Shown here: positions 1-63,244 of the stretch, piece by piece
Position numbering within the stretch: position 1 is the stretch's first letter
How the letters are laid out: every line of letters begins with the position of its first letter
Assembly (NCBI GenBank): GCA_029953675.1
Contig: JAMWBK010000003.1
Coordinates: forward strand, 1,178,001-1,242,000
DNA length: 64,000 nt
DNA from: Rhodosorus marinus CCMP1338
Taxonomy: Eukaryota > Plantae > Rhodophyta
Direction of reading: 5' to 3'
Translations under genes and position numbers: made by a program
The notes under the pieces: generated by a model
The model's database searches: none
What the model saw: the letters and a program-made list of their open reading frames with translations, nothing else
What the model was told of the DNA's origin: nothing

Positions 1-982
1 GAACAACCTCTCACAACGTGTAAGAAAATAAACTATCCTATTGCCCAGCAGATCTTTGGGAATATGCCTAGCTTTTGTGTAAACTGAACAAACCCCGGCC
101 GCGTCCCATTCAGAGCTTTACAATGTTGAAATCCCCCCTTTTGCCCAACGTGATTTTCAAACAGGCCTAATTAGTAATGATATTTAAGAATATATTACAA
201 ACAAATTGGGAGTCATCCCCCCCGGTGTCAATTCGCACAGTTTTCCCTGCGAAAAGCTGACTCGATATGTGCGAGCGCTGACTGCCGGCCATCGGGGGAA
301 GCAAGCAATGATTGATATAAAAACCAGCACCGTAGTAGCTAATCAGAGAGCGGAGATGCACAGACCAGCGCAAAATCAGCAAAGAATTTACAGAACAGCA
401 CGCGCAATGGAAAGCCGTCCCAACCCAATTGTCCGTAAAACCATGGCAACTGATCCACATCAATCAAGTGGCAGAGTATCTTGCAACTACTTAGCAGAGC
501 AAATACCCAGACCGATTGACTTTCCATATCAATGAACTTACCCCGATCTTTATCAGAAGCGTCGAAATGAGAATGTTGTCCCAATACCAGCACGCAACAC
601 CCACCCCACCTCCCCCCTCGCTCGTCACCGTTGGGATCGGTGGGTAGCACCGTTCGGGAGGGTCAATAGAATCCTATTGGATGAAATATTTTCTCATTGG
701 GGGGCCCAATGGGAATACTTTCGTTGAACGTCAATGAGTTAGGGAGGGTTTTCAAGGACTTATTAGTAGAAGGATGAAGTGAAAGAGGGTGAGGAGAGGA
801 AGGGCGGTGAGTGCTGATGAGGATTGAAATATCAGCTAGGAGGACAAAACCTGGATTGTGGTAATTAGGGGTTCTTGGATGCGTAGGAGGTTTTATTGGG
901 CGTGGGGAGGGGCAGGATTGCGAGGTTTGACACGAGTCGGGAGGAGTTGAGTTGATTTATTTACTTTTGTGTGTTTATTTCG

Positions 983-3417
983 ATGGAGCAGGATAGCGAT
1001 TTGATGAGCGCGATTTATGCTCATCTTAGACGAGCAGGATTGGATCGAGCCTGTACAGTTTTGAGGAAGGCTGGTGTTAAGGTGCGGTTCTTACAAGTTT
1101 GATTTTGTCTGGATGATCTGATGATACTTGGGGTTCGCCTTACTGAAGTTTGCTCTGCTCCTTGGCTTTTCTTTTTGTTCCGTAGGAGCCGACAGAAGAT
1201 GGAGAATCATTGCTCGAGATGTGGAGGAAGCGAAAGCTGAGTACTGACGAAGGGGAGAGACCGGGGAAGAAGGTGAAGAAGAGTGAGAGTGAGGACGACA
1301 GTGAAATGTCTGACTCTGAGGATAGTAGTGCATCCGATAGCGATGATGAGGAGAGCGGCGAGGGCGAGGCTACGACTGGAGATATCTCTAGAAAGCGGGG
1401 CCGAGACGAAGAAGAAAGCGATGAAGACGGCAGCAGCGAAGATGGAAGCGACGAAGAGGAGAGCAGTGAAGAAGGTAGCGATGAGGATGAAAGTGACGAT
1501 GATAGCAGTAAGGAAGAAAGCAGCAATGAAAGCGATGAATCCAGCGTGGAGGAGAAGGGCAAGAGGAAGCAGGAAAATGCCAAGGAAGAAGAATCCAGTA
1601 GCGAGGAGGAGAGTAGCGACGCAGATGATGAAAGCGATGCGGAAGAGAGCGAGGAAGAGAGTGGAAAAGATATAAGCGATGAGGAAGAAAGTAGTGATGA
1701 CAGCGGCAGTGGCGATGAGGAAGAAGATGGGGACGAGGATAGCAGCAGTGATGACGAGGAAGAAGATAAGCACAAGGATAGCAGCACTAGTGATGAGGAA
1801 GAAGACAAGGACGCGGATAGCAGCAGCAGTGGTGAGGCAGAAGATGGGGACGAGGATAGCAGCAGTAGTAATGAGGAAGAGGATAAGGACGAGGATAGCA
1901 GTAGTAGTGATGAGGAAGAAGACAAGGACGAGGATAGCAGCAGTAGTAATGAGGAAGAGGATAAGGACGAGGATAGCAGTAGTAATGATGAGGAAGAAGA
2001 CAAGGACGAGGATAGCAGCAGTAGTGATTTGGAAGAAGATAAGGACGAGGATAGCAGCAGTAGCGATGAGGACGAAGATGGGAAGGAGGATAGCAGCAGT
2101 AGTGGTGAGGAAGAAGACAAGGACGAGGACAGCAGCGGTAGTGATGAGGAAGAAGATGGGGACGAGGATAGCAGCAGTAGTGGTGAGGAAGAAGATGGGG
2201 ACGAGGATAGCGGCAGTGATGACGAGGAAGAAGATAAGGACGAGGATAGCAGCAGTAGTAATGAGGAAGAGGATAAGGACGAGGATAGCAGTAGTAGTGA
2301 TGAGGAAGAAGACAAGGACGAGGATAGCAGCAGTAGTACTGAGGAAGAAGATAAGGACGAGGATAGCAGCAGTAGTGCTGAGGAAGAAGATAAGGACGAG
2401 GATAGCAGCAGTAGTGATGAGGAAGAACATAAGGACGAGGATAGCAGTAGTAGTGATGAGGAAGAAGATAAGGACGAGGATAGCAGTAGTAGTGATGAGG
2501 AAGAAGATAAGGACGAGGATAGCAGCAGTAGTGATGAGGAAGAAGCTGCCGACAAAGACAGCAGCAGCGAGGATGACGATGACGATGATGACAAAGAGAG
2601 CAGCAGCGAGGACGAGGATGGCGATGAGGACAAGGATAGCAGCGACGAGGATGACGATGACGATGATGACAATGAGAGCAGCAGCGAGGATGAGAATGAC
2701 GCTGATGACAACGACAACGAAGACGATAGCGATGGAAAAGACAATGGCTCCAGTGAGAGTGGCGATGACGATGGTAACGACGATGATGACGAAGGTAGCG
2801 AAGGGAGTAAGGACAGTGAAGAAAAGGCAGAAAGTGACGGTGCCGAGGATGAGGACGACGATTCCGAGAGTGGTAGGGCTGGTTCTTCCGAGTGATGAGT
2901 TTATTCTTGAACCGTTCCACGGTCCATTGTCGGTTTAGAATCGATTCGCTGAACGTCATAGTTGTTGACCTGTCATAGGAGGTCCTGCGGGTGATGATGG
3001 CGACGAGAACATGAAAGAGGTAAGGACGATACAGGCATAACAACTTGTTTACACGTACTCATTTGCTCTTTGCTGTGTTCAAATCGCTGCTATTCTCAGA
3101 TCAAGTCTGCTCCAGCCACACCCACAACTAAACCCCGTAGCCCGTCCAATGGAAGAATGAAGGGAGTAAGTACGGAGCCGAGACAAAGGTTTCAGCGAGT
3201 GAAGGCCGAGGATGTGGAACTGGACGATGATAGACTGAATGACAACACTTACACAAGCAAAGGAGGTGAGACGTTCGGGTTGAAAGCCTGGAATACTCTG
3301 AAGCAGGTTCGTGGGAAAGATTTCAGGCGGGAAAAGACGAAGAAAAAACGAAATACGTTCTTCGGTGGTGGCGGGATCTCAATGGGATCGAACTCCATTA
3401 AATTCGATTCGGAATAG
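983..3417 (+). CDS. SRP40: Nucleolar phosphoprotein Srp40/Nopp140-like (LisH-like N-terminus, acidic Ser-rich repeats, SRP40_C domain)
   Basis: Phase-consistent exons 983-1081, 1186-2872, 2979-3019, 3100-3417 with GT-AG introns. N-terminus MEQDSDLMSAIYAHLRRAGLDRACTVL is LisH-like, followed by a long D/E/S tract. C-terminus RQRFQRVK...GLKAWNTLKQVRGKDFRREKTKKKRNTFFGGG.ISMGSNSIKFD is the SRP40_C signature. Confidence 0.92.
1720..2545 (+). repeat. Coding minisatellite, 39-bp unit (about 20 copies) encoding DEDSSSSDEEEDK
   Basis: GACGAGGATAGCAGCAGTAGTGATGAGGAAGAAGATAAG and close variants recur in tandem within the SRP40 exon. Confidence 0.95.
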
Positions 3418-3562
3418 ACGACCCCGAGTTCCCACACACTGTTCCTAAAAAGCAGCGGCGGGCTCTGCGAAGTTTTGACGTTCACGAGGGATGCATTGTT
3501 GCACCGATTTTGCCTCTGGATGGATGAGACAAGCACGTTTCTGGTGATACTTCTGTTTCTTG

Positions 3563-4293
3563 TTAATTTTTTTTGTTCCCCACTAACATTGGGTCATTAC
3601 CTGCGGCGCAAGGTTGTACTATTGTAAATGTATCGAATACGCTTTGAACGCCAGCAAACTCTTTCGCAAGTCGAATGGCCCCCTCTTCTCTGTTGCTGTC
3701 AAGAAGCCCGCTGATAAGAAGATTCGTCGGAGGTCTGTGCGGAGAATCGAGGCCACGGAGACGGCAACATCCCGTAGACATTCCTCGTGCGATGCTTGTT
3801 CTTTGGCCTACTTCGCGTCCTGAATCTGACACAACTCGAGAAGAGAGCAGCCGCCAGAGCCCGTGATATCAATCTCGCCCTAGCAGAGCAAAAGTAGACT
3901 TGACTTAACTTAATTTCCAAGGGAAATTGTAGAATCATGGTCCATCTGATCGCAGTAGTCAGAGATAATCCACGGAACCTGATCCAATTCCAGTCCCAGG
4001 AGCAGAAAAGGACACCACCATTCTTGACATGTCCTGGAAGAATCAGGCTTCAGAACATGGACGTGATTGGCATGAGGGAGAATCCATGGTCCGTCTAAAA
4101 GCACACAGTAAAGGCAATACCTTGTGAGGAAAAAAGCTGTAGGATACATCCTTCGAGGATAAGATGAGGATACGGCCGTTACGAAAATCAGTCCGGACTC
4201 ACGCTCAATCTCTATTTCAGTCAATATAAGACAATTTTTCTGTTGAATAATAGTCGATGGGAAAATTATTCTGGAATACGGAGAAGAATCCAT
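3563..4293 (-). CDS. Possible multi-exon hypothetical protein
   Basis: Adjacent minus-strand ORFs 3910-4293 and 3563-3832 with plausible GT/AG sites. No family recognised and exon structure unresolved. Confidence 0.3.
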
Positions 4294-4585: not shown

Positions 4586-6187
4586 ATGGATTTGAGAAAT
4601 TCGGTGGAGGACAATGCGGTTGACGACGAAGAGGTTACCTTTAAACCCCGAGGGGACAGAATTCGGGAGTTTCGAAGAAGGCGAAACGAAGCGAAGAAAA
4701 GCGACGTAGCTGCGCTGAGCGAGCAGAGCGGAAAGGAGAACGTAGAGAACCATGAGCAAATCCGGCTCGACCAACCAAAGCTCAAAGATATTTCGGGCCG
4801 GGAGAAAGAAGTGGTGACTTCCATAGACAAGGCTATTCGGGAGTCTCATTCGCGACAGTCACCCATATATTCGTCAAGAGATTCGAATACTATCACTGCT
4901 ATGGAGCTCGCAACTCCCATCCTTGAGAAAAATGCTGTCGTCAAGATGGATTTGGCCACTGTTGCGAAGCACACAGCAACCAAGCGACTGGATTTCAGCG
5001 ACGCGAACGACCTAATCCTCTCTAGTGGAAAGCGCGTAGAAACTCTGACCAGTTCTCAGCAAAAAAGAGAAGCGGACAGTCGCAGTGGACAGCAACACGC
5101 TGGCGATGTAAGAGGAGATTCAACTGCCGTAGAGCCAGCAAACTCCGAGAGACAGCTTGTAACCTTCCACCTAGAGGATCAGAAGCTGGAATCGGAGGAG
5201 ATAAATGAGTCTACAGAAAAAGAACATAACTCACTGGAAGCTAGTTCCGACGGAGAAGGAACCGTTCCCAAGGACTCCGTGCACAACGATACTCACGCTG
5301 AAGATTCTGTACCTAAAGACGGAGATGATTGCTCAACAGCCAAGGACAAATGGATCGAAGAGAAGACCGGACAGGAGACGGCTATCGCTGAAGTGAACTC
5401 GTCGCTTGACGCTGAGCTGGAATCCATGCGCCTCGAGCTCGAGAAAAGGAGCAACGAGCTCACTCAGGTTAAGAATGATTTCACGGCCACTGTGCACAAA
5501 TTGACAATAGAGAGCGAACAAACGGCAGCGGAGGAGCAGTCTCTTCTAAAATCTGAGAATGAAAAGTTACAAGAGGAGCTGCGCTCAAACTCCGCGGCGT
5601 TCTCAAGCTTGAAGCAGCGATATGGCAAGTTCAAGGACGCCATCATAAAGTATGACGCTCAGGAAAAGGAGCTGATATCTCAGATACGGACGCTCAAGAA
5701 GACGCTCTTGGAACTTGAGAAATGGAACAAGGACTTCAAGCAACACGCCGAGAAGAAACTTGAAGAGGCGTTCGAGCAGGCGTGTGCATACAGAAATCAA
5801 GCGAAGGAGAAGAGCGCCGAGGCGGATAAGTTAATAGCAGAAGGGATAGATCTAAAGGATAGCTTGGATGCCGTCCAGAAAGCCAAACAGGAGCTTGAGG
5901 TTAAGGTCCAGTCCCTTGCGGCTGAAGTGGCGGAACTTCGTCAGACTGTACATAGACTAAATAGATCCGGACAGAGCCTGAGCGAAAGCAAACAGATTGA
6001 GGACCGATTGACGGCATGCGAAGAAGAAAATAAGGCGCTTAAAGTGAAAATGTTCGATTCCATGCAGCTAATGGAGGCTCTGAGGAAGGAGCGCGACGAT
6101 GAGCGGACTGCGAAAACTGCGCTTGAAAAGCAAAACAATGAGCTCCAAACTCTGTGCGATGAGCTCTTCTTAAAGCTCGAAGTGTAG
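4586..6187 (+). CDS. TACC: TACC-domain coiled-coil protein
   Basis: 533-aa ORF with a disordered N-half. The C-terminal coiled coil LKQRYGKFKDAIIKY...FKQHAEKKLEEA...KQNNELQTLCDELFLKLEV matches the TACC-domain pattern (RYEKLK.VI.GY...LK.HAEEKL...ENEELTRICDDLI.K). Confidence 0.75.
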   Translation: MDLRNSVEDNAVDDEEVTFKPRGDRIREFRRRRNEAKKSDVAALSEQSGKENVENHEQIRLDQPKLKDISGREKEVVTSIDKAIRESHSRQSPIYSSRDSNTITAMELATPILEKNAVVKMDLATVAKHTATKRLDFSDANDLILSSGKRVETLTSSQQKREADSRSGQQHAGDVRGDSTAVEPANSERQLVTFHLEDQKLESEEINESTEKEHNSLEASSDGEGTVPKDSVHNDTHAEDSVPKDGDDCSTAKDKWIEEKTGQETAIAEVNSSLDAELESMRLELEKRSNELTQVKNDFTATVHKLTIESEQTAAEEQSLLKSENEKLQEELRSNSAAFSSLKQRYGKFKDAIIKYDAQEKELISQIRTLKKTLLELEKWNKDFKQHAEKKLEEAFEQACAYRNQAKEKSAEADKLIAEGIDLKDSLDAVQKAKQELEVKVQSLAAEVAELRQTVHRLNRSGQSLSESKQIEDRLTACEEENKALKVKMFDSMQLMEALRKERDDERTAKTALEKQNNELQTLCDELFLKLEV

Positions 6188-17600: not shown

Positions 17601-19277
17601 TCCTCAGTTCGGGATAGTCGTCTTTGAAAATTTTGGAGTTGAAGAACAATACCCTTTGGCCTCTGTCAGAGAACGAATTGGCCGACACATCGTTTCATTG
17701 GCAACCTGGACAAAGCCAATCGCGACCTGCTCTGGTGTGAAGTGCCTGGCTACATAGCCCTTTCGAGTCTCTTGTTGGAGCATCTCAAACGCGTTCACCT
17801 CCTTGGTGAGTTTGTCAAACGCCACCTTGGTCGCCTCAACGTCAAGTGGCTCATTCGCATCGGGCCCAAAGATTTTGGGAAACATGGACGGTACAATTCT
17901 TCCTAGCAGGAGGTTGGCGTCCGTAACCGCTAGCTCACCTCCCTTCCTGTAGCAGGCCGGTCCCGGATGTGCGCCGACAGACTCCGGGCCAACAACGAAT
18001 AAGCCCGAGCGGAAGAACAGCCTGGATCCCCCACCTGCGGCGACCGTATTAATATCCAGCTGTGGTGCTTGGATCGTTACCCCGGAGGTTTCGGACTCAA
18101 AGACGAGCTCCAAATGGCCAGCGTAGCGTGAGACGTCCGTTGAAGTACCGCCCATATCGAAACCAATCACCGAGCGTGGAGGTTTCCCGTCCTCGCTTTC
18201 CTTGTACGCCGTGCGAGAGAACCTGTAATTGTGTACGTGTAGAGGCCAAACATCTGGTGCTTCAGCCTCGAGCGTTGAGGAAACGTCAATTGCCGGGAGG
18301 ATTCTCACCCAATGACTCCACCGGCTGGCCCAGACAGCAGCCCACGATAGCCCGTGAAGGTGTCGATGCTGCATAAGCCTCCATCGCTTTGCATGAACTC
18401 GACAGAGACGTCCTTGAGGTTGTTCTGGAAGCCTTGGCTGAAGCCGGTGAGGTAGTCTGTGATTTTAGGAGTCAGATACGCATCCACACATGCCGTATAT
18501 CCGCGAGGGGTCAGCTTTGACATTGGTGTTAAACGACTGCTTAGAGACACGTGGGTGAACCCTAAAGAACGGGCAAGCTTTTCAACGGCCTCCTCATGCT
18601 CTCTGTAGATGTACGAGTGCAGCAACGCGACAGCCAAGGAGCGGATGCCCAATTCATCTCGAATGCGGATGAGGTCCTGTTCCAACGTGGCAAGATCCGG
18701 TTCCTTCAGAACCTCCACACGAAGTCCCTTCGCGCTCTCTCCGTCCCGGATGATTGCCACCCGCTCATCAAACTCAACGGCTGTACTGTAGAGAACATCC
18801 GCTCGCTTCACACGTAGATCAAAAATGTCTGGCCGTGACTTTCCAAAATCAAATGAAGAGGACTCACTTAGATTATTGGTTTCGTGGTTTCAAAGCTCCG
18901 TTCAAGGTTCTCTGTTATGGCTTTCATTTTACCTGGTTGCCAATCTTCAGAACGTCGCGCATGCCTTTCGTGACGACGAACGCAAACTTTTCCCCCTGAC
19001 GCTCCAGTAGAGCGTTGGTAGCGACCGTTGTGCCCATTCTGATCCAGTCAATCCTGGAGGTGTCAACCGGTTCACCTCTCTGGTGAGGAATACCAGTTTT
19101 TTCCTCGAGAATCCTTCTGATGCCTTCTGTGGGCGCATCTTTATAGTTGGCCGGGTCTACAGACAGAAGCTTGTGTACTTCACCTTTGGTTACCCCATCT
19201 CTCGTCTCTTCCACGTAAATATCAGTGAAAGTTCCTCCACGATCGACGGCAAACTTAAAACGGGGTTGCTCCTCCAT
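14642..19277 (-). CDS. OXP1: ATP-dependent 5-oxoprolinase (fused hydantoinase A/B type), about 11 exons
   Basis: Motifs [144 protein letters not shown] and the last exon [11 protein letters not shown] are joined by phase-consistent GT-AG introns. Confidence 0.97.
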
Positions 19278-28441: not shown

Positions 28442-29896
28442 TTAAATTTTCTTGTTTACGAAAACGTTGTCCACGGTTTTCGCCGTGCCGTTATTTGGGC
28501 TGGGTTCGATTTCGAGCAGCTTACATATTGTGGCGTAAACATCCACCGATTTGAAGTTGTCTATTCTCCGACCATCAGATGGGAAACCGGGGCCGTTCGC
28601 TATAAATATCGCTTGCATGTTCTGTTCATCATTTGCAAAGCCGTGGTCCCCCCAAACGTCCGATTTTTGATCAAGGATGGATTTGTAGAAAAGGCTTACC
28701 CCCGGTTTGCAAAGGCTAACCACTGGAGGTCGAAAAAGAAGTGCATCCTTGTAATGCCAATTGGTCGGTGTATCTTCGACCATCATGACCTGAACACCAC
28801 CTGCGGCTTGAACTGCTTGGAGAGATTGAAAGAGCTGGCTCGAGGATGTACCATTTGTTGGGAAAAACTGTCCAAGAGGACTGGTTGCAGGAGAGATGAA
28901 GTCGTCCGTGCTCACCAAATCGTCGAACACCAAAGCATCAGCTTTTTTCATCTCCTGCATTCCATGATCGCTCACCACCACGACGCTAGTTCGATTGCTG
29001 AACGGCTGAGCGTGAATCTTCTCGATTAGTTCCCCGAGTGCCGCGTCTGCATCTTGGACTGCCTTCCTCACTTGCTCACTGTTTGGGCCGTGCTCATGGC
29101 CATTTCTATCCACATAATTCAAGTACAGCGTCACCAGCCTAGCTTCACGATCACCCGGCATGCCTTTACCTCCCAAGAAATTTATCACCTGGTTTACCCT
29201 CTTTTCATACTTCATCTCAGGATCATAGTCGAGGTAAACGTCTGGGGTAGAGAAACGGTCGGAGACTACTTCCGAGCCTGGCCAAAAGGCTGCCGCAGTA
29301 GTCAACCCAGCTCGCTTTGCTGTGCTCCACAAGGGGTCCCCAAACCACCACTTCGGATTCTTGTGATCAAAAACTGTGAAGAACGTTTCATCCCGAACGT
29401 CGTACATGTTGTTGTCAATGATGCCATGCCACGCTGGGTACAAGCCGGTCACAATGGACCAGTGGTTGGGAAACGTCTTGCTCGGCATTACCGGCTGCAT
29501 ATGAGTTGCTGATACTCCGCTTTCGCGTAGCTTTCGTAAAGTGGGTGCCAATGGCTTTCCCTCATCGTCTTTGAGGTCCAGATAATCCCATCGAAACCCA
29601 TCTATTGAAACCAGCACTACAGATGCCTTACTTATATCCAAGCTCTCATCTGTAGCGGGAACCGTCGCATCAGCATCGATCGAAGGATAGATCGCTCTCA
29701 AGATCACCGTGCCCACCACAAATGCTGCCGAAACAGATATTAAATATAAAATAACACGCTTCCAGAGGCCAGGTCTCGTTCTCCCCGTAATCAGACCGGA
29801 TCGCTCACCCTCAATCACATCATCATCTTCCACGCGAACCGGGAAATCATCCTCCACAGGAATTGGGAAATCTTCTTCATCCTGCTCAATATCCAT
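28442..29896 (-). CDS. Ectonucleotide pyrophosphatase/phosphodiesterase (NPP, alkaline phosphatase superfamily), type II membrane
   Basis: Intronless 484 aa with an N-terminal TM helix. Motifs VLVSIDGFRWDYL, PSKTFPNHWSIVTGLYPAWHGIIDN (catalytic Thr), DRNGHEHGP, VSDHGM and GDHGF. Confidence 0.95.
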   Translation of the reverse strand: MDIEQDEEDFPIPVEDDFPVRVEDDDVIEGERSGLITGRTRPGLWKRVILYLISVSAAFVVGTVILRAIYPSIDADATVPATDESLDISKASVVLVSIDGFRWDYLDLKDDEGKPLAPTLRKLRESGVSATHMQPVMPSKTFPNHWSIVTGLYPAWHGIIDNNMYDVRDETFFTVFDHKNPKWWFGDPLWSTAKRAGLTTAAAFWPGSEVVSDRFSTPDVYLDYDPEMKYEKRVNQVINFLGGKGMPGDREARLVTLYLNYVDRNGHEHGPNSEQVRKAVQDADAALGELIEKIHAQPFSNRTSVVVVSDHGMQEMKKADALVFDDLVSTDDFISPATSPLGQFFPTNGTSSSQLFQSLQAVQAAGGVQVMMVEDTPTNWHYKDALLFRPPVVSLCKPGVSLFYKSILDQKSDVWGDHGFANDEQNMQAIFIANGPGFPSDGRRIDNFKSVDVYATICKLLEIEPSPNNGTAKTVDNVFVNKKI

Positions 29897-35046: not shown

Positions 35047-36297
<1,251 letters not shown>

Positions 36298-36570: not shown

Positions 36571-38170
36571 TCAGACTGTGTCGCTCGGCACAACGGAAGA
36601 CGCGAGAACTTCGGTGTCCTGGACGAGCTGCTGAAGCAGGTCGCGTTCCTTTTTTTGGCCCGCGACTCTCGCGCCATCAGCCGATTCCGCACTTGCATTC
36701 TGCTCTGTGGCAGTCCGTGTTCGTAGCCGATGCAGCTCCAGAATATTGCTAAAATTATCACGAAGCATTATATCCACATCCTTTTCCAGTAAGCTATTGT
36801 CTTTCGAACCTGTCGCAGTGCAAGAAAGAACAATACGGGATTTCTGGAATCAGGAACACCGCAGCTGCCACAATCCATCCCTGTCGATAATGTGGCCAGG
36901 TCGCCTTACCATAATAATTGTACACGTCAGCAAACACCGACTTCAATGCCCGGATAGTCTTCTCCGGGACTTTACCTGTCTCGGACAGACTACGAAGGAA
37001 GGCGTCCGATTCGTTCTTTGGAGGCATCTTCTTGGCTGTGACCGCCTTCACCTTTGCCAACGTTTGGGAATCCAGTGCCCTTTCGAGAAGTTTGTCTGAA
37101 ACCTGCTGTGGCGAGTCGCCACGAGAGTTCAACAACAGCTTCTGCATAAGCGAGTTCGATTCAAGACCTCCAGCGCCGATTATTGTTCCAATACTGTCCG
37201 AACCGGTATTCGCAACTTCTCTGCGTGGAACATCAGGGGATGACATTGTCTGACGACCTGTGTGCACAACTGAGTTCGCACTGTTTGGTTCTGCTGTTCC
37301 CAACGACCTATTTGCACTTGCATGGACCAAACCCTTGGTATCTCGCGCCGAGCTTTCCCGCGAAGCTGGATCATCCTTTGAGGGAGAAGACACCAACGCA
37401 ACTTCGATCAGCACGGGGTCTCCTGAACACACTTGGGGACCTCGAGCCCAACCAGTTCCATAAGAGCTTACCTCTAAGCGTTCGGTTTGTTCAGACTGCT
37501 GGGTGCTGTATCCTCCGCTCTGGAGCTCCTGTTGACGGGAAGGAACTATACTGTCCAAGTCTTTCTCCAGGTCACTGACCATAAGCTGCCTTGGTCGGCC
37601 TGGTCGTCCGTGTCCCACCCCTTTTGGACTATTCGGGAATCTTGGACTTGCGTGGCCACCACCCGACTTTCTTCGTTTAGCGCCGGGGCTTGTCGCTGAT
37701 TCTCCAAAATATTTGTCATAGAGTTCGTCCGCAATACCCCTCAGCTTGACCGCTTTCTGGTAGTACTTGGTTTCCGGTGCATTGTACAAACAACAGTTAG
37801 CCCATATTAGGTCAATATCTGCCTTCATCTGCTTGGCGGAAGCATACTGGTTCTCGGACAACTTGCGTCGGATTGATCCGAGATCCATTGGACGCTTAAT
37901 AACCCTTAAATAGTCAGTTACGATGTGAGTTGGAACCGGTTCGAGGAAGAATCCTTGCGTATCCGCTTGAACGAGCTTGTTAGCAATCCGCATTCCATTC
38001 TTTTCCAGAAATTCTTCCTCTTTCTGCTGCGCAGCAAGAGAAATCCTTTTGTGTTTCTTTTCTCTTGGCGAGCTCACGTCCGAATGAACGGGACCTACAT
38101 CTTCTACGTTCTCAGACTTATATCGCGGGGGAACTACCCGAACCCTCAACGCTCTCTCCCCGTCCTTCAT
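36571..38170 (-). CDS. Bromodomain protein, BRD7/BRD9-like
   Basis: Exons 38170-36910 and 36809-36571. Bromodomain DTQGFFLEPV...DYLRVIKRPMDLGSI...IWANCCLYNAPETKYYQKA. C-terminal LELHRLR...LASSVVPSD resembles the BRD7/9 C-terminus. Confidence 0.85.
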
Positions 38171-40194: not shown

Positions 40195-41370
40195 ATGACT
40201 GCGGTATTTGAAGCAGCTCCAATTGACAACCAGATTTTCAAATTTGAGAGGGAGAACGAGCTCGATATACAGTTTGTAGAGGATGAGAGTGCTGAAGGAC
40301 AGAGTACAGACTTGTGTAAGAACTTTTTCTCTACAGCTGGATGCTTGAAGGGCGCAAGATGTCAGTATAGGCATGCCCGAAATGATCGGCTCATCGTGTG
40401 CAAGCACTGGCTCCGTGGGCTTTGCAAGAAGGGAGAATACTGTGAGTATCTCCATGAATTTGACAAGTCTAAGATGCCTGAGTGCTATTTCTTCTCCAAG
40501 TTCGGTGAGTCATATTATCATAGCCTGCTTTGCCAAGCGGAATAAATGCTAACTGCGTTTGTTTATCTCCTAGGAGAGTGCAATAACCCTGAATGTGCAT
40601 ATCGCCATGTTGATCCCGACAAGAAGCGGAATGAGTGCCCCTACTATGCTCGAGGCTTTTGCAAGCACGGACCGAAATGCCGACTTAGACATGTGAAAAG
40701 AGAAGCGTGCAACGACTATCTGTTGGGTTTCTGTAAGAACGGACCGGACTGCGTTTTCGGCCATGCCAGATTTGAGATTCCTCGAGTTGAAGATGACGAG
40801 GATGGACCCGCGGGAATAGATCGGTTCGGATTTGGCAGGCCCAAGGCGGCCGCTGGGCTCGCAAGAGCCAATTCCGGGGACGCTGATGGGTAGGAGCTCT
40901 AGTGCCATGGCCACTGCGCTCTTGTTCAAGATACTGAAGTCACTGACTCATTCCATTTGCTCTCGTTCTGCAGGTCTGCAGATAACGAGCAAGGGGATTC
41001 CAGCACATCGCGTGGGCCTCCCGGGGGTGTGGGAAATGCAAACCAAAGAGGACTACCCGGATCCGGAAACCGACCTCCATTCGGGGGCATGGGAGGCCCC
41101 CCGAACCTGCCAGGAGGATTTATACCTGGGATTGGAATGGAGGGCAACCTGCCGTTCGGAGCTCCGAACCAGGCGATGGGCATGGGGATGAATCCAGTTT
41201 TCGATGGAGGGGACAATAATACGCAGATGTCTGGAATGGGTGGGAACAGGCAAGGGGATGGGGGACGAACGCCTATTGTCTGCCATCATTGCCATCAACC
41301 TGGGCATATTCGACCCAAGTGTCCGCTGCGAGCTGCACAACTAGGGAACAACCCCGGAGGCGCCACCTGA
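40195..41370 (+). CDS. CPSF30: Cleavage and polyadenylation specificity factor 30 kDa subunit (CCCH fingers + C-terminal CCHC knuckle)
   Basis: Exons 40195-40504, 40574-40889, 40974-41370. Motifs VCKHWLRGLCKKGEYCEYLHEFDKSKMPECYFFSKFG|ECNNPECAYRH, CPYYARGFCKHGPKCRLRH and CHHCHQPGHIRPKCP. Confidence 0.96.
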
Positions 41371-41718: not shown

Positions 41719-44213
41719 CTACGTCTGGGCAGCCAGGTCGGCGTCCAACAGACTCTTCACTCGTTCCATTAGCATTGATGCTCGTGATTCCAATGCCCTA
41801 GAGTAAGCTTCCAAAACAGATTTCCCAACGTCCGAATTGTCTTCGATCTTCACCTGTCGATCAGCAGCAACCAGAAGAAAAGACCACACCGACAAGGTCA
41901 GACTTTCTCTTTCCACAGTTCTATTCATGTCTGCGTTAGTCGTGGTGCATACCTCCTCGACCTTTGTGTGAGCCATCTTCGGGAATTTCTCCTTGATTGT
42001 TCGAACAGCGTTCTCAGCACGCTTTTGAGCGCATTGGATTTTTGCTTTGTTGTCCTTTCGAATACGGTCGAAGATAGAGACGGGTTGATTAAGACGCATC
42101 TTCCATATCAGGCTGGTATACTCTATTCGATTTGCCAGTCCCAACGCATCCTTTTCATTCCACACGCCTCGTTCTTTTAAGTACTGTAGCCATCCGGTAG
42201 CAAGATTCAATGAGCTTTTGTTTTCGGTGCGTTCTCAATGACTTAGTGGGTCAGATGGGTAAGTCTACGTACTTGTTCAATGTTGAAGACCCTCCAAGTG
42301 GTCAGGGCATCCACTAGTTCTCTTGAAATCACGTTCCTCGCGTGTTTCGGTAGTCTGTTAATATACTTTGCGGGGATCTCCATGTTGTTCAGGACCTGAC
42401 TATTGATTCTATGACAGTCCTTGTACATAGAAGTGATCTGACAGCAAGAGTTGCGTCGTTAGAATTCAGTAGATCTTGACATTCACGATCGCGGGAGCCC
42501 ATGTAGGCTAATGCCTACCTCCTCATATACGTTGAGCATCTGCGATTTCAACGGTCTCGAAAGTCCACCCGCAGCAACCACAGGCGCATTGATCCACCAT
42601 TTCTGACCGCCATCAACCTCCTCTCTTTTTTTGTATGTAACTTCACCCTTCAGGTCCTTAAATCCGGCGACGATCTGCTGGAGCCTTTCATCATGCTTTT
42701 GCAACGCAGGCAGGTGGGTTTTGATATCCTCTCGTGGGACTTCTCCCATAACTTCAACTGGCCTGCCATTAACGAGCTTAGTCTCCGCAACTCGCACAAC
42801 AATGGTCTGAGCCAGCTTGCGGTACAGACTCATTTCTCGGTTCCAACGGTCAACGGACTCCTTCGGGAGCGGCGCCAGGCATTTCATTTCTCCAAAGGTC
42901 CCAACATTGAGACTTGTAATGTGGTTGTTCATCATAACCGCGGTGGACTTTCCGTTTCCTCTTCCAGTGCTGTCGCCTCCAACAATGATAGATATGATAC
43001 TGAGTCACAACAATGAACAAAATCAAGAGTGCCTGTCAGCTGGGCGGCCAAGGTTTTCGGTGACCATTCAGTAGCTTCTCTTACTTTTCGTCGCTCATGT
43101 AATGGTCTTTTGGAACTGATCTCCTGACAGACCCCCGTGGAGTTCCGCTCGTTCCTGTTTCACCCGTTTCTTGGCTTCGGTTTAAGGTAGCATCCACTTC
43201 CAACGAGTGGTCATGCTAGGGTAGAAAATCAGGACGAAATACGGACAGCAGTTAGCAAAAAGGCTTAGCTTCATCATGGTCGTTGATATGACTTGCTCCT
43301 AAGCGAGTGTGAACTTACGGATGAGTCTAAACGGCTGGATTCGTTTTCCCCCTCTTGAGATCCTACTGGTTGTACTGATCTCCGACTGCTTGCTTGAAGT
43401 GCAACCCGCAGCTCTTCGATACGGCTGATAACTGCTTCGACTGTCTGAGAAAGCTTTTCTCGCTCCTCCTCGGAAGCCTTAGGGATCACCTGGTTTGGAG
43501 TGAGAAGGAAATTTCTCCCTTGCTTCAACATTCTCATCGACAGCGAGCATATGCGTTTCCCGAAACATTCGTATGTTCGATTAACATACCTGCATGAATT
43601 GCCTAACGACCAGTAGATAGAGCTCATGAGCGAGCTCGTAGTCTTCGGCTTCATCTGCGGCTGTGGCCGTCTCAGCATTCGAAAAAGCTTCAGATTTCAG
43701 AGCAAGAAGCCTTTCCTCCTCCGGCGTTTCCGCCGAGGCCGCGATTGGTTTAATCGAGGTGCGCAGGTTTGGCTCTGAGTCTGCACTCTCAAGGGTTTTG
43801 ATTGGCACCGGCGGTGGTGGCATCATAGACCCTTCCAGCATTGGCGGCCCCGTCCTCGGCATATCTGTTCTTGCGTCGAACGTGTCCACTCCATCCTCGA
43901 CATTTGCAATACTTGCTTTGTTTTCGTCAGTCAAGGTCAAATTTTCCTCAAAGCGGTTCACGATCGACGCGACGTTTCCCTTGGCCTCCTCATCTCGCAG
44001 GCGTGACGATATAAATGTGCCTAAAGCGTTGCTCCCCGAATTCCTGCTAGAAACGGATTGCATCGTTTCCATATTCGGAACTGGTGCGAAGCTGCCTTGC
44101 TCTGTACCCAGCTGTCGACCTCCAGTCACCTTCTTGCTGCTTGGAGCGTCCCCTAGCTTCTTTGCATCATTTCCCACGTTCAGCGAATTTTTCTGCTTCT
44201 CAGTATCAGCCAT
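41719..44213 (-). CDS. ROPGEF: PRONE-domain Rop/Rac guanine nucleotide exchange factor with N-terminal MIT-like domain
   Basis: Seven phase-consistent exons: 44213-43590, 43489-43319, 43215-43085, 42999-42519, 42437-42273, 42183-41953, 41853-41719. PRONE motifs IVGGDSTGRGNGKSTAVMMNNHITSL, WNREM, PREDIKTHLPALQKHD, KWWINAP.V..GGLS, INSQVLNNMEIPAKYI..LPK, LANRIE and KIEDNSDVGKSVLEAYSRALESRA. Confidence 0.88.
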
Positions 44214-61837: not shown

Positions 61838-63244
61838 GTGAATGAGAATAGTACGATGGCATCAGTAGATTCTAAGTTTGGGGAGGAGTGTGCTGTGGAC
61901 ATGCCCGGCGTCACCGGTGAGCCGGTTGATGACTTGAATGATGCGGTCGAGCAGACCAAAGACATCGAGAGCGGAGACACCGTAGATCGGGCCTGCGAGA
62001 ATCTCAGCGTTGGACTTGCGATATTCCTGCTTATCGTGGATATGGTTGGTACGGGAGTGCTGAGCGTGCCCAACTCGTTCGCGACACTAGGATGGATACC
62101 GGGACATCTTACTCTTGCGTTCTGCTGGATAATCTCGATGTTGGCGGGTGTACTGCTGTGGTACCTGCGATACAAGAAGTACGAAGTGCATTCGTACCCG
62201 CAGATGTTCAGCGCTGCCTTCGGGAAGAAGGGGTTGGTGTACGCACGATGCAACATGTACCCGCTCCTGTTCTTGTACACCTCCGCGTTCAGCTACACAC
62301 AGGCTCAAGCATGGAGCGCACTTTTTGCTGGATCCCCCGTATCGCTCAAGGAGTGGATGGTAATCGCTGGGTTCGTCTCTCTTGTTGTGCTGCAACTCAG
62401 GAGCTTCAAGGCAATGGCGCTCACGTCTATGATCGCCATTGTGACTATCATTGTCCCCGTTGGAATTTCCTTCTTCGTGTTTGCGGACATGGTGAAGGAT
62501 CCGGTGGCGTATCCGGTCGGGCCACGCGTGCTGTTTTCGTACTACGGAACATCGGATTGCGTAGTCGCCGCCATGGATATTCTGTACGCTTTTGCCGGTG
62601 CCGTCGTGTTCCTGGAGATTATGAGCACGATGAAATGCGTCAAGAATTTTCCATACGCCTTGATTGTTTCTCAGACCTTCGCGTACCTGTTCTACGTGAC
62701 TGCTGGTTCTGTAGTGTACGGCCTTGCGGGGGATGCGACGTGGCTGAAATCCCCGTTCACGAACTCGCTTCAGCCGGGAGCTGCTTCGATCGTGGCCAAT
62801 GCCTGTATTGTCATTCATGCGTCCATTGCGATCATCGTGACCGGTCAAGTGCTGATTTATGCTTTCCAGAGGGCCGCTGAGCCGTTTGTTAAGCGCATGT
62901 TTCTTGGCAGTGACAACGCTCCATACAAGGTTGCACCACTGACGTGCAACAAACCGGCGGCGTTGATGTGGTGGTTGTTGTGGTCGTTCATTGTAATATT
63001 GTTTGCAACCCTTACGAATATTATAATTCCATCTTTCCAGATCTTTCTGGCTCTAATTTCTTCTCTGATTGGCTCCCAGACCACGCTGCTTTGGCCTGCA
63101 ATCATTGATATTCATGCGTTTGCCAAAGTGAGAACGGGAAAGCAACACCTTCTAACTGCGTTTAGCGCGGTATTAGTCACTCTAGGAATTGTAGCTATTG
63201 TATTGGGGCTGTTTGGTGACATTGTTGTTATTATTCAAGAATAG
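61838..63244 (+). CDS. Amino acid permease (Aa_trans/AAAP family)
   Basis: Intronless 468 aa with about 11 TM helices. Motifs DMVGTGVLSVPNSFATLGWIPG, SYPQM..AAFGKKG, LYAFAGAVVFLEIMSTMK..KNFPYAL and LISSLIG. Confidence 0.93.
   Translation: MNENSTMASVDSKFGEECAVDMPGVTGEPVDDLNDAVEQTKDIESGDTVDRACENLSVGLAIFLLIVDMVGTGVLSVPNSFATLGWIPGHLTLAFCWIISMLAGVLLWYLRYKKYEVHSYPQMFSAAFGKKGLVYARCNMYPLLFLYTSAFSYTQAQAWSALFAGSPVSLKEWMVIAGFVSLVVLQLRSFKAMALTSMIAIVTIIVPVGISFFVFADMVKDPVAYPVGPRVLFSYYGTSDCVVAAMDILYAFAGAVVFLEIMSTMKCVKNFPYALIVSQTFAYLFYVTAGSVVYGLAGDATWLKSPFTNSLQPGAASIVANACIVIHASIAIIVTGQVLIYAFQRAAEPFVKRMFLGSDNAPYKVAPLTCNKPAALMWWLLWSFIVILFATLTNIIIPSFQIFLALISSLIGSQTTLLWPAIIDIHAFAKVRTGKQHLLTAFSAVLVTLGIVAIVLGLFGDIVVIIQE

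Follow-up and report, generated by a model that had tools for sequence, protein, structure and literature searches.

The stretch of DNA analysed here, called the window throughout, comprises 64,000 nucleotides (nt) of the red alga Rhodosorus marinus CCMP1338 (contig JAMWBK010000003.1, positions 1,178,001 to 1,242,000, forward strand). On its minus strand, at 44213-41719, it contains a gene whose predicted product joins an N-terminal MIT domain to a complete PRONE domain, the catalytic domain of the plant guanine nucleotide exchange factors (GEFs) known as RopGEFs. Judged from its relatives, such an MIT-PRONE protein is the form that PRONE normally takes in red algae, and it is found in every red-algal class sampled. 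Its MIT domain may bring Rho activation to sites where ESCRT-III assembles. The coding segments of the gene and the parts of the protein, numbered in amino acids (aa), are the following.

44213-43590, minus strand: exon 1 (three-frame translation and splice sites, as for the other exons)
43489-43319, minus strand: exon 2
43215-43085, minus strand: exon 3
42999-42519, minus strand: exon 4
42437-42273, minus strand: exon 5
42183-41953, minus strand: exon 6
41853-41719, minus strand: exon 7
43716-44213, minus strand: N-terminal region, aa 1-166, of low complexity and rich in Ser, Glu, Ala, Pro and Thr (composition, alignment)
43590-43715, minus strand: MIT helices 1 and 2, aa 167-208, end of exon 1 (Pfam MIT, AlphaFold2)
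43379-43489, minus strand: last part of MIT helix 2, followed by helix 3, aa 209-245, start of exon 2 (AlphaFold2, Foldseek)
43108-43378, minus strand: flexible Ser/Gly/Glu-rich linker, aa 246-301, remainder of exon 2, intron 2 and start of exon 3 (composition)
41722-43107, minus strand: PRONE RhoGEF domain, aa 302-645, exons 3-7 including introns 3-6 (Pfam, RopGEF8 match)
42599-42594, minus strand: WW pair W443/W444 (PRONE alignment)

Seven coding segments were found by three-frame translation and assembly at splice sites, and when joined in frame they gave a product of 645 aa running from an ATG at 44213 to a stop codon at 41721-41719. An earlier reading of the letters, made without database searches (the sequence-only reading), had proposed seven phase-consistent exons at 41719-44213; its coordinates proved exact, the joins are in frame and homologues are co-linear with the model. 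The six introns, of 100, 103, 85, 81, 89 and 99 nt, are all of the GT..AG type, and the junction between exons 1 and 2 reads ...VVRQFMQ/VIPKASEEE..., the same as that quoted in the earlier reading. For introns 3 and 5, other acceptor sites were rejected, as they yield stop codons or the wrong frame. The alignment with Arabidopsis RopGEF8 (aa 302-642) is free of gaps at junctions 3/4, 4/5, 5/6 and 6/7, and the whole model is co-linear with the 657-aa open reading frame (ORF) of a transcriptome contig of Bangiopsis sp. CCMP1999 (P0002), in which MIT and PRONE lie within a single uninterrupted reading frame. A 5-residue gap appears at the exon 3/4 junction when the window protein is aligned with that of Bangiopsis, but because RopGEF8 aligns without a gap at this same junction, it is taken as a genuine sequence difference.

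The gene could also be compared with a 1.3-kb genomic contig of a related species, probably a congener (L002, run SRR32518360), which spans exons 2-6, aligns to window positions 43343-42037 and is 86% identical at the nucleotide level. The exons of both are 84-92% identical, with one 3-nt gap and zero frameshifting indels; identity in the introns is lower, at 68-80%, and indels there measure 1, 2 and 11 nt, but the GT/AG dinucleotides are kept at all four introns covered. Between the PRONE exons 4-6 of both sequences there are 51 synonymous and 9 nonsynonymous codon differences, pointing to purifying selection on these exons. The linker exon 3 shows 5 synonymous and 13 nonsynonymous codon differences, with no indel and with its frame kept.

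A bacterial-style ORF track breaks this locus into pieces, and the gene model rests on genomic DNA and homologues. The fusion might therefore be seen as an artefact, with the MIT exons coming from a gene of their own upstream and the PRONE gene starting at an internal ATG. However, introns 1-3 measure only 85-103 nt, which is too short for a terminator plus a promoter, and contigs of Bangiopsis, Ancoracysta and Agarophyton labelled as transcript assemblies encode MIT and PRONE in one ORF each, as does a 1.6-kb contig that lacks both introns and a source label. Moreover, although the linker exon changes fast, its reading frame is preserved in the related species. An artefact of this kind is extremely improbable, and from these comparisons the gene model is judged to be right and the fusion to be real and under selection.

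The PRONE domain is complete. The Pfam profile (PF03759) matched aa 308-644 over model positions 8-360 of 361 (E = 3.4e-66, 224 bits, cut-off 27), and the top solved structure was the PRONE domain of RopGEF8 (2ntx_A, E = 2.1e-46), with aa 302-642 aligned to chain residues 10-357 over the full length and with a sole insertion of 8 residues, located in RopGEF8. A conservation set was compiled from plant, algal and protist PRONE domains, 60 in all and full-length; identity reached 85% or more in 40 of its columns, of which the window protein retains 39, with a conservative V for L at the remaining one. Residues L350, W361, L408, Y431, W443, W444 and P491 were invariant in an alignment of 37 sequences, and the WW pair among them is said, in the work of Thomas et al. 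2007, to be catalytically important. The catalytic domain is thus alike over its full length to that of land-plant RopGEFs (PF03759; RopGEF8, PDB 2ntx/2nty/2wbl), with which the window protein has in common an LLGxDxSG-like N-terminal helix, the WW pair and a C-terminal LE(A/S)YSRxLES motif.

It might be thought that red-algal PRONE is not a Rho exchange factor at all, acting on another small GTPase or serving only as a scaffold, since its domains, that of the window protein included, are only about 26-31% identical to Viridiplantae-type PRONE in the alignment, and since non-streptophyte PRONE-like proteins have been described as being of limited similarity (PMC11194304). Against this stand the near-complete set of family-wide positions, with the invariant WW pair among them, the full-length RopGEF8 alignment with its single insertion in the latter, and the fact that red algae encode Rho-pathway components (PMC5499878). 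A function other than Rho exchange therefore seems very improbable, and Rho-GEF activity of the window protein is predicted with good confidence.

The Pfam profile PF04212 located the MIT domain at aa 175-236; its score of 35.4 bits for the full protein rose to 41.5 bits for the segment alone (cut-off 30). Both profiles thus pass their cut-offs on the spliced protein, and chance accounts for neither match. When 13 equivalent segments of the family were tested, 12 matched the MIT profile at E < 0.01. A profile made from the 13 segments matched 22 sequences of the PDB, MIT domains without exception, the best being the MIT domain of VPS4B (8.1e-11), followed by calpain-7, VPS4A, MITD1 and yeast Vps4; the same profile also matches archaeal AAA ATPases annotated as Vps4-like or katanin p60. 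The AlphaFold2 (AF2) model of the segment, obtained from the 13-segment alignment, consists of three helices with a mean predicted local distance difference test score (pLDDT) of 91.6. The helices cover model residues 2-23, 27-47 and 50-80, corresponding to aa 167-188, 192-212 and 215-245, with the last four residues of helix 2 encoded in exon 2. In Foldseek searches the first 18 matches were all MIT domains, with TM scores of 0.7-0.85 and root-mean-square deviations (rmsd) of 0.9-1.4 Å to crystal structures, and the top ranks were taken by VPS4B-IST1, VPS4A, Vps4 and MITD1 MIT structures at about 1 Å. Pfam, the 13-segment profile, the AF2 and Foldseek results and the RopGEF8 match thus uphold the proposal of the sequence-only reading that an MIT domain precedes a complete PRONE domain in one gene.

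Compared with the MIT domains of VPS4A, VPS4B and Vps4, that of the window protein shares the three-helix bundle and 24-29% of its residues, and it has the A..A..DE..Y..A..LY and R.E.L signature, with a hydrophobic residue at the position of L64 and an acidic one at that of E68, whereas the MIT domain of this family is joined to a GEF and not to an AAA ATPase and has its own Pro after helix 2. Residues I229, R231 and E233 of the window protein align with L64, R66 and E68 of VPS4A, and A180 with V13. In VPS4A, L64 belongs to the groove for type 1 MIT-interacting motifs (MIM1) and V13 to the MIM2 groove (PMC11218997), and the residues found at these grooves in the window protein are plausibly compatible with ESCRT-III binding. 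The L64-equivalent is hydrophobic (I/L) and the E68-equivalent acidic (E/D) in the members from the window, Galdieria, Porphyridium and Ancoracysta. The florideophyte-type MIT segments (P0012, P0039, P0052, P0056, P0070, P0071, P0078 and P0081) are highly conserved among themselves and share the pattern AERAVQCDE.EEY..AFELYW.VV.LYYKVIPFL.

Outside the two domains, the N-terminal aa 1-166 are probably disordered. The window protein and its Bangiopsis orthologue have in common the motifs SNALG..ISSRL, VASIV.R.E, VDTF, P(R/K)TGP.ML and EP.LRT in this region. In comparisons with P0002, P0012 and P0056, the motifs kept upstream of the MIT domain were VDTF or PDTFC, P-x-T-(G/D)-P and one resembling SIV.RFE, which could serve in docking or regulation. 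At the other end, the variable C-terminal region regulates land-plant RopGEFs; in contrast, the window protein has 0 residues beyond PRONE, lacking any variable or autoinhibitory C-terminal extension of the land-plant RopGEF type, and carries instead a 300-aa N-terminal extension with the MIT domain. Members of the MIT-PRONE family have 144-660 residues before PRONE and 0-66 after it (192 in one member), compared to mostly 60-130 residues after PRONE in the full-length representatives without MIT. The last PRONE helix, LMERVKSL, has a loose likeness to a MIM1 motif (LxxRLxxL); a role for it as an intramolecular ligand of the MIT domain was considered and dropped, as it lies within the PRONE stretch aligned with RopGEF8.

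To explain this architecture, we propose that the PRONE domain would catalyse GDP/GTP exchange on the alga's own Rho/Rac-type GTPase, as in plant RopGEFs, and that the MIT domain would supply targeting and a regulatory input to the GEF. The groove that lies between helix 2 and helix 3 of the MIT domain would dock the MIM helices that polymerised ESCRT-III subunits carry in their C-terminal tails, for which tails of the CHMP1/Did2, CHMP2/Vps2 or IST1 type are candidates, and Rho would in this way be switched on locally at ESCRT-III assembly sites such as the cytokinetic bridge, endosomes or places of membrane repair. The N-terminal MIT domain would then replace the regulation exerted through the variable C-terminal region in land plants. 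The retention of the fusion from Galdieria to Agarophyton and in Ancoracysta argues that MIT and PRONE work together. Among human MIT domains the majority bind tails of ESCRT-III (PMC9477494), the MIT domain of the window protein is nearest to the promiscuous VPS4 type, and in the red alga Cyanidioschyzon merolae CHMP1, 2, 4-6, ALIX and VPS4 are found at the intercellular bridge, where they mediate abscission (PMC7169423). Overall, we regard a mechanism in which MIT recruits or gates Rho activation by PRONE at ESCRT-III as evenly poised between right and wrong, and ESCRT-III as the ligand of this particular MIT domain as slightly less secure than that.

Several observations weigh against the proposed mechanism. 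Most florideophyte members have Thr or Arg at the L64-equivalent position (Hildenbrandia P0056 has Ile), so that a groove of the MIM1 type is unevenly kept across the family. The Pfam threshold detects MIT in few members, namely the window protein, the Galdieria protein and a contig of run DRR659772; the other MIT-PRONE orthologues scanned fell below this threshold or gave no match. C. merolae is said to be without F-actin and myosin (PMC7169423), and the usual output of Rho would therefore be missing there. In the 64-kb window, no Rho/Ras-type GTPase was found when sought by motif, and no ESCRT-III gene was found. Finally, the MIT domains of human NRBF2, ULK1 and VPS9D1 bound no ESCRT-III protein (PMC9477494).

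The human MIT domains just named also support the main rival to ESCRT-III recruitment, which holds that the MIT domain binds a partner other than ESCRT-III, or folds onto PRONE or the N-terminal motifs as an autoinhibitor, replacing the variable termini of the plant proteins. Autoinhibition of PRONE GEFs is on record (PMC6767298), the red-algal MIT-PRONE proteins are without a C-terminal tail, and the conserved short motifs upstream of MIT could be intramolecular ligands; the Thr or Arg of florideophytes at the L64-equivalent would also fit. On the other hand, the profile and the fold are nearest to the ESCRT-III-binding MIT domains of VPS4, MITD1 and calpain-7 and not to that of NRBF2, and the I/L and E/D residues at the L64 and E68 positions are present in the members from the window, Galdieria, Porphyridium and Ancoracysta. 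We consider autoinhibition or another partner a possible but rather doubtful explanation. A role like that in katanin p60, with the MIT domain tethering the GEF to microtubules or a partner associated with them and Rho being activated along the spindle or midzone and not on ESCRT-III, is suggested by the presence of MIT-type domains of katanin p60 among the structural matches (5lb7, 6gzc and 5ow5), but these rank far below VPS4 and MITD1 in both sequence and fold searches, and the MIT domain of human KATNA1 itself binds the ESCRT-III protein CHMP3 (PMC9477494), making this tether improbable.

The distribution of the MIT-PRONE architecture was followed with a HMMER search of 1.84 billion cluster representatives (clusters at 50% identity) with exon 4 as the query, which yielded 131 PRONE proteins, among them one 97%-identical fragment. 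An iterated search of these relatives and of the window protein with the window MIT segment showed that 18 of the 132 have an MIT-like domain ahead of PRONE (the window protein and 17 of the 131 relatives). According to their source labels, the relatives that carry it come from the following groups.

Cyanidiophyceae: Galdieria yellowstonensis, Cyanidium caldarium, Cyanidiococcus yangmingshanensis
Porphyridiophyceae: Porphyridium purpureum
Stylonematophyceae: Bangiopsis
Florideophyceae: Hildenbrandia rubra, Agarophyton chilense
Outside red algae: Ancoracysta twista (P0008; a contaminant is possible)
Origin unlabelled: the intron-free contig of run DRR659772 (P0014) and several unlabelled assemblies

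The order MIT-linker-PRONE and the lack of a C-terminal tail are common to KAK4525271 (Galdieria yellowstonensis), KAK4537327 (Cyanidium caldarium), KAK4532974 (Cyanidiococcus), KAA8493410 (Porphyridium purpureum, 'Rop guanine nucleotide exchange factor 1') and the proteins from Bangiopsis CCMP1999, Hildenbrandia and Agarophyton. All these form one clade with the window protein in a distance tree. To this group the window protein adds a new member; its best identity is 54% in the most conserved exon, and it is 48% identical overall to the Bangiopsis protein. Its MIT domain is among the most canonical of the family and one of the few to pass the Pfam threshold; most other members are listed in databases as PRONE only because their MIT scores lie under it.

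In the neighbour-joining (NJ) distance tree of PRONE domains, which is crude, without resampling support and serves as a guide only, the window protein is sister to Bangiopsis P0002 within the red-algal clade. All members of this clade bear MIT except for two entries with shorter N-termini: P0083 has just 17 residues ahead of PRONE, and the gene model of P0013 may be truncated. MIT was not found in the recovered Viridiplantae-type PRONE proteins, including those of Cymbomonas, Closterium, Pteridium and many plant-like sequences, and the statement of the sequence-only reading that land-plant RopGEFs have no MIT domain holds for all these representatives. Nor was it found in the recovered haptophyte PRONE clade, in which the Scyphosphaera protein (P0016/P0149) shows PRONE followed by WW domains. 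The MIT-bearing proteins of Ancoracysta and of run DRR659772 branch basally in the plant and haptophyte clades. The architecture and the orthology of the MIT-PRONE proteins are nearly certain in our view, and there are hints that MIT-PRONE is older than the red algae. Only tentatively, we would combine these readings into one in which MIT-PRONE is ancestral to the PRONE family and survives in red algae and at least one heterotroph of deep branching, Ancoracysta, MIT was lost in the green lineage, and the protein makes a direct link from ESCRT-III to Rho, for example at the red-algal cytokinetic bridge. A 2025 review states that PRONE-GEF is restricted to Archaeplastida (PMC12445832). The PRONE proteins seen here outside that group are the MIT-PRONE protein of Ancoracysta and the haptophyte clade with C-terminal WW domains, for which contamination is possible.

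The searchable literature holds no paper pairing 'PRONE domain' with 'MIT domain'; Elias 2008, reportedly the first report of red-algal PRONE, lies outside that scope. Neither does any paper in it pair 'RopGEF' with 'ESCRT-III', and the combination of 'MIT domain', 'red algae' and 'Rho' returned calpains only. RopGEFs are on record for the haptophyte Emiliania as well as for red algae, which have Rho-pathway components alongside (PMC5499878), and the statement of the sequence-only reading that PRONE is reported from red algae is borne out (PMC5499878, PMC12445832). Reviews treat the non-streptophyte proteins as PRONE-like with limited similarity and leave their architecture unmentioned (PMC11194304, PMC12445832). 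The description of the fusion as an undescribed module therefore stands as far as no paper joins both domains, but it has to be qualified, as the architecture is widespread in red algae and its sequences were already public. Similarly, on whether the combination might already be commonly catalogued, a few automatic Pfam matches to MIT plus PRONE do exist, whereas most entries appear as PRONE only.

Among known proteins, human VPS9D1 (predicted MIT plus VPS9) resembles the window protein in that MIT is joined to a small-GTPase exchange factor, but the GEF fold and the GTPase family are others, the VPS9 domain being a Rab-GEF domain, and homology between both proteins is limited to MIT. To our knowledge, VPS9D1 is the only other case of MIT joined to a small-GTPase exchange factor and the sole human MIT-GEF protein, and we know of no Rho regulator with an MIT domain. 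The proposed logic, by which an N-terminal MIT domain delivers a catalytic module to ESCRT-III, is the same as in spastin, calpain-7, ULK3, MITD1 and AMSH/USP8 (PMC9477494, PMC10586806), although none of these MIT-recruited abscission enzymes regulates Rho. A survey of human MIT domains lists no Rho regulator, and the term 'GEF' is missing from its main text (PMC9477494).

The genomic neighbourhood was also compared. The stop codon of the MIT-PRONE gene lies 348 nt from that of a convergent gene encoding a CPSF30/Yth1-like protein, which is not part of the GEF. The corresponding convergent pair is present on Bangiopsis contig L003, with the CPSF30-like neighbour at 2901-3986 on its minus strand, and the neighbours of window and Bangiopsis are 53% identical over 344 aa. 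Because this convergent neighbour is common to both, the two MIT-PRONE loci are considered orthologous. Judged by such relatives, the source of the window would most likely be a red alga akin to Bangiopsis. This gene and the other features recorded in the window are listed below.

40195-41370, plus strand: CPSF30/Yth1-like gene whose product has zinc fingers of the CCCH and CCHC types (Pfam zf-CCCH)
1210-2895, plus strand: 561-aa ORF for an extremely acidic Ser/Asp/Glu protein
1702-2643, within the 561-aa ORF: repeat array of 24 tandem copies of the 39-bp unit SSSSDEEEDKDED
4586-6187, plus strand: 533-aa ORF with a TACC_C (PF05010) match at aa 276-411 (34.2 bits, threshold 29.9)
17604-18374, minus strand: hydantoinase/oxoprolinase
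28442-29896, minus strand: type I phosphodiesterase/nucleotide pyrophosphatase
35056-35961, plus strand: zinc alcohol dehydrogenase
36794-38170, minus strand: bromodomain protein
61838-63244, plus strand: amino-acid transporter

Long ORFs are open on both strands in the repeat region of the acidic protein, and the acidic repeat ORF at 1210-2895 is probably the reason for the strong purine skew of window positions 1-4000. The product of the 533-aa ORF could be a TACC-like spindle protein. The remaining large ORFs resemble ordinary eukaryotic housekeeping genes, and no tRNA genes were found in the 64-kb window.

Taken singly, both domains are well understood, PRONE as an activator of Rho-family switches and MIT as a reader of polymerised ESCRT-III. 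Their fusion, retained all the way from Cyanidiophyceae to Florideophyceae, implies that MIT and PRONE have long been linked in function. MIT-PRONE would thus offer a handle on the role of Rho signalling in red algae, and on how furrowing and ESCRT-III abscission may be coordinated in eukaryotes without an actomyosin ring. It would also change the evolutionary account of the plant RopGEFs, in that an MIT input at the N-terminus may have been lost in the green lineage, which later gained regulation through the variable C-terminal region. These proposals are testable in the genetically tractable Cyanidioschyzon and Galdieria.

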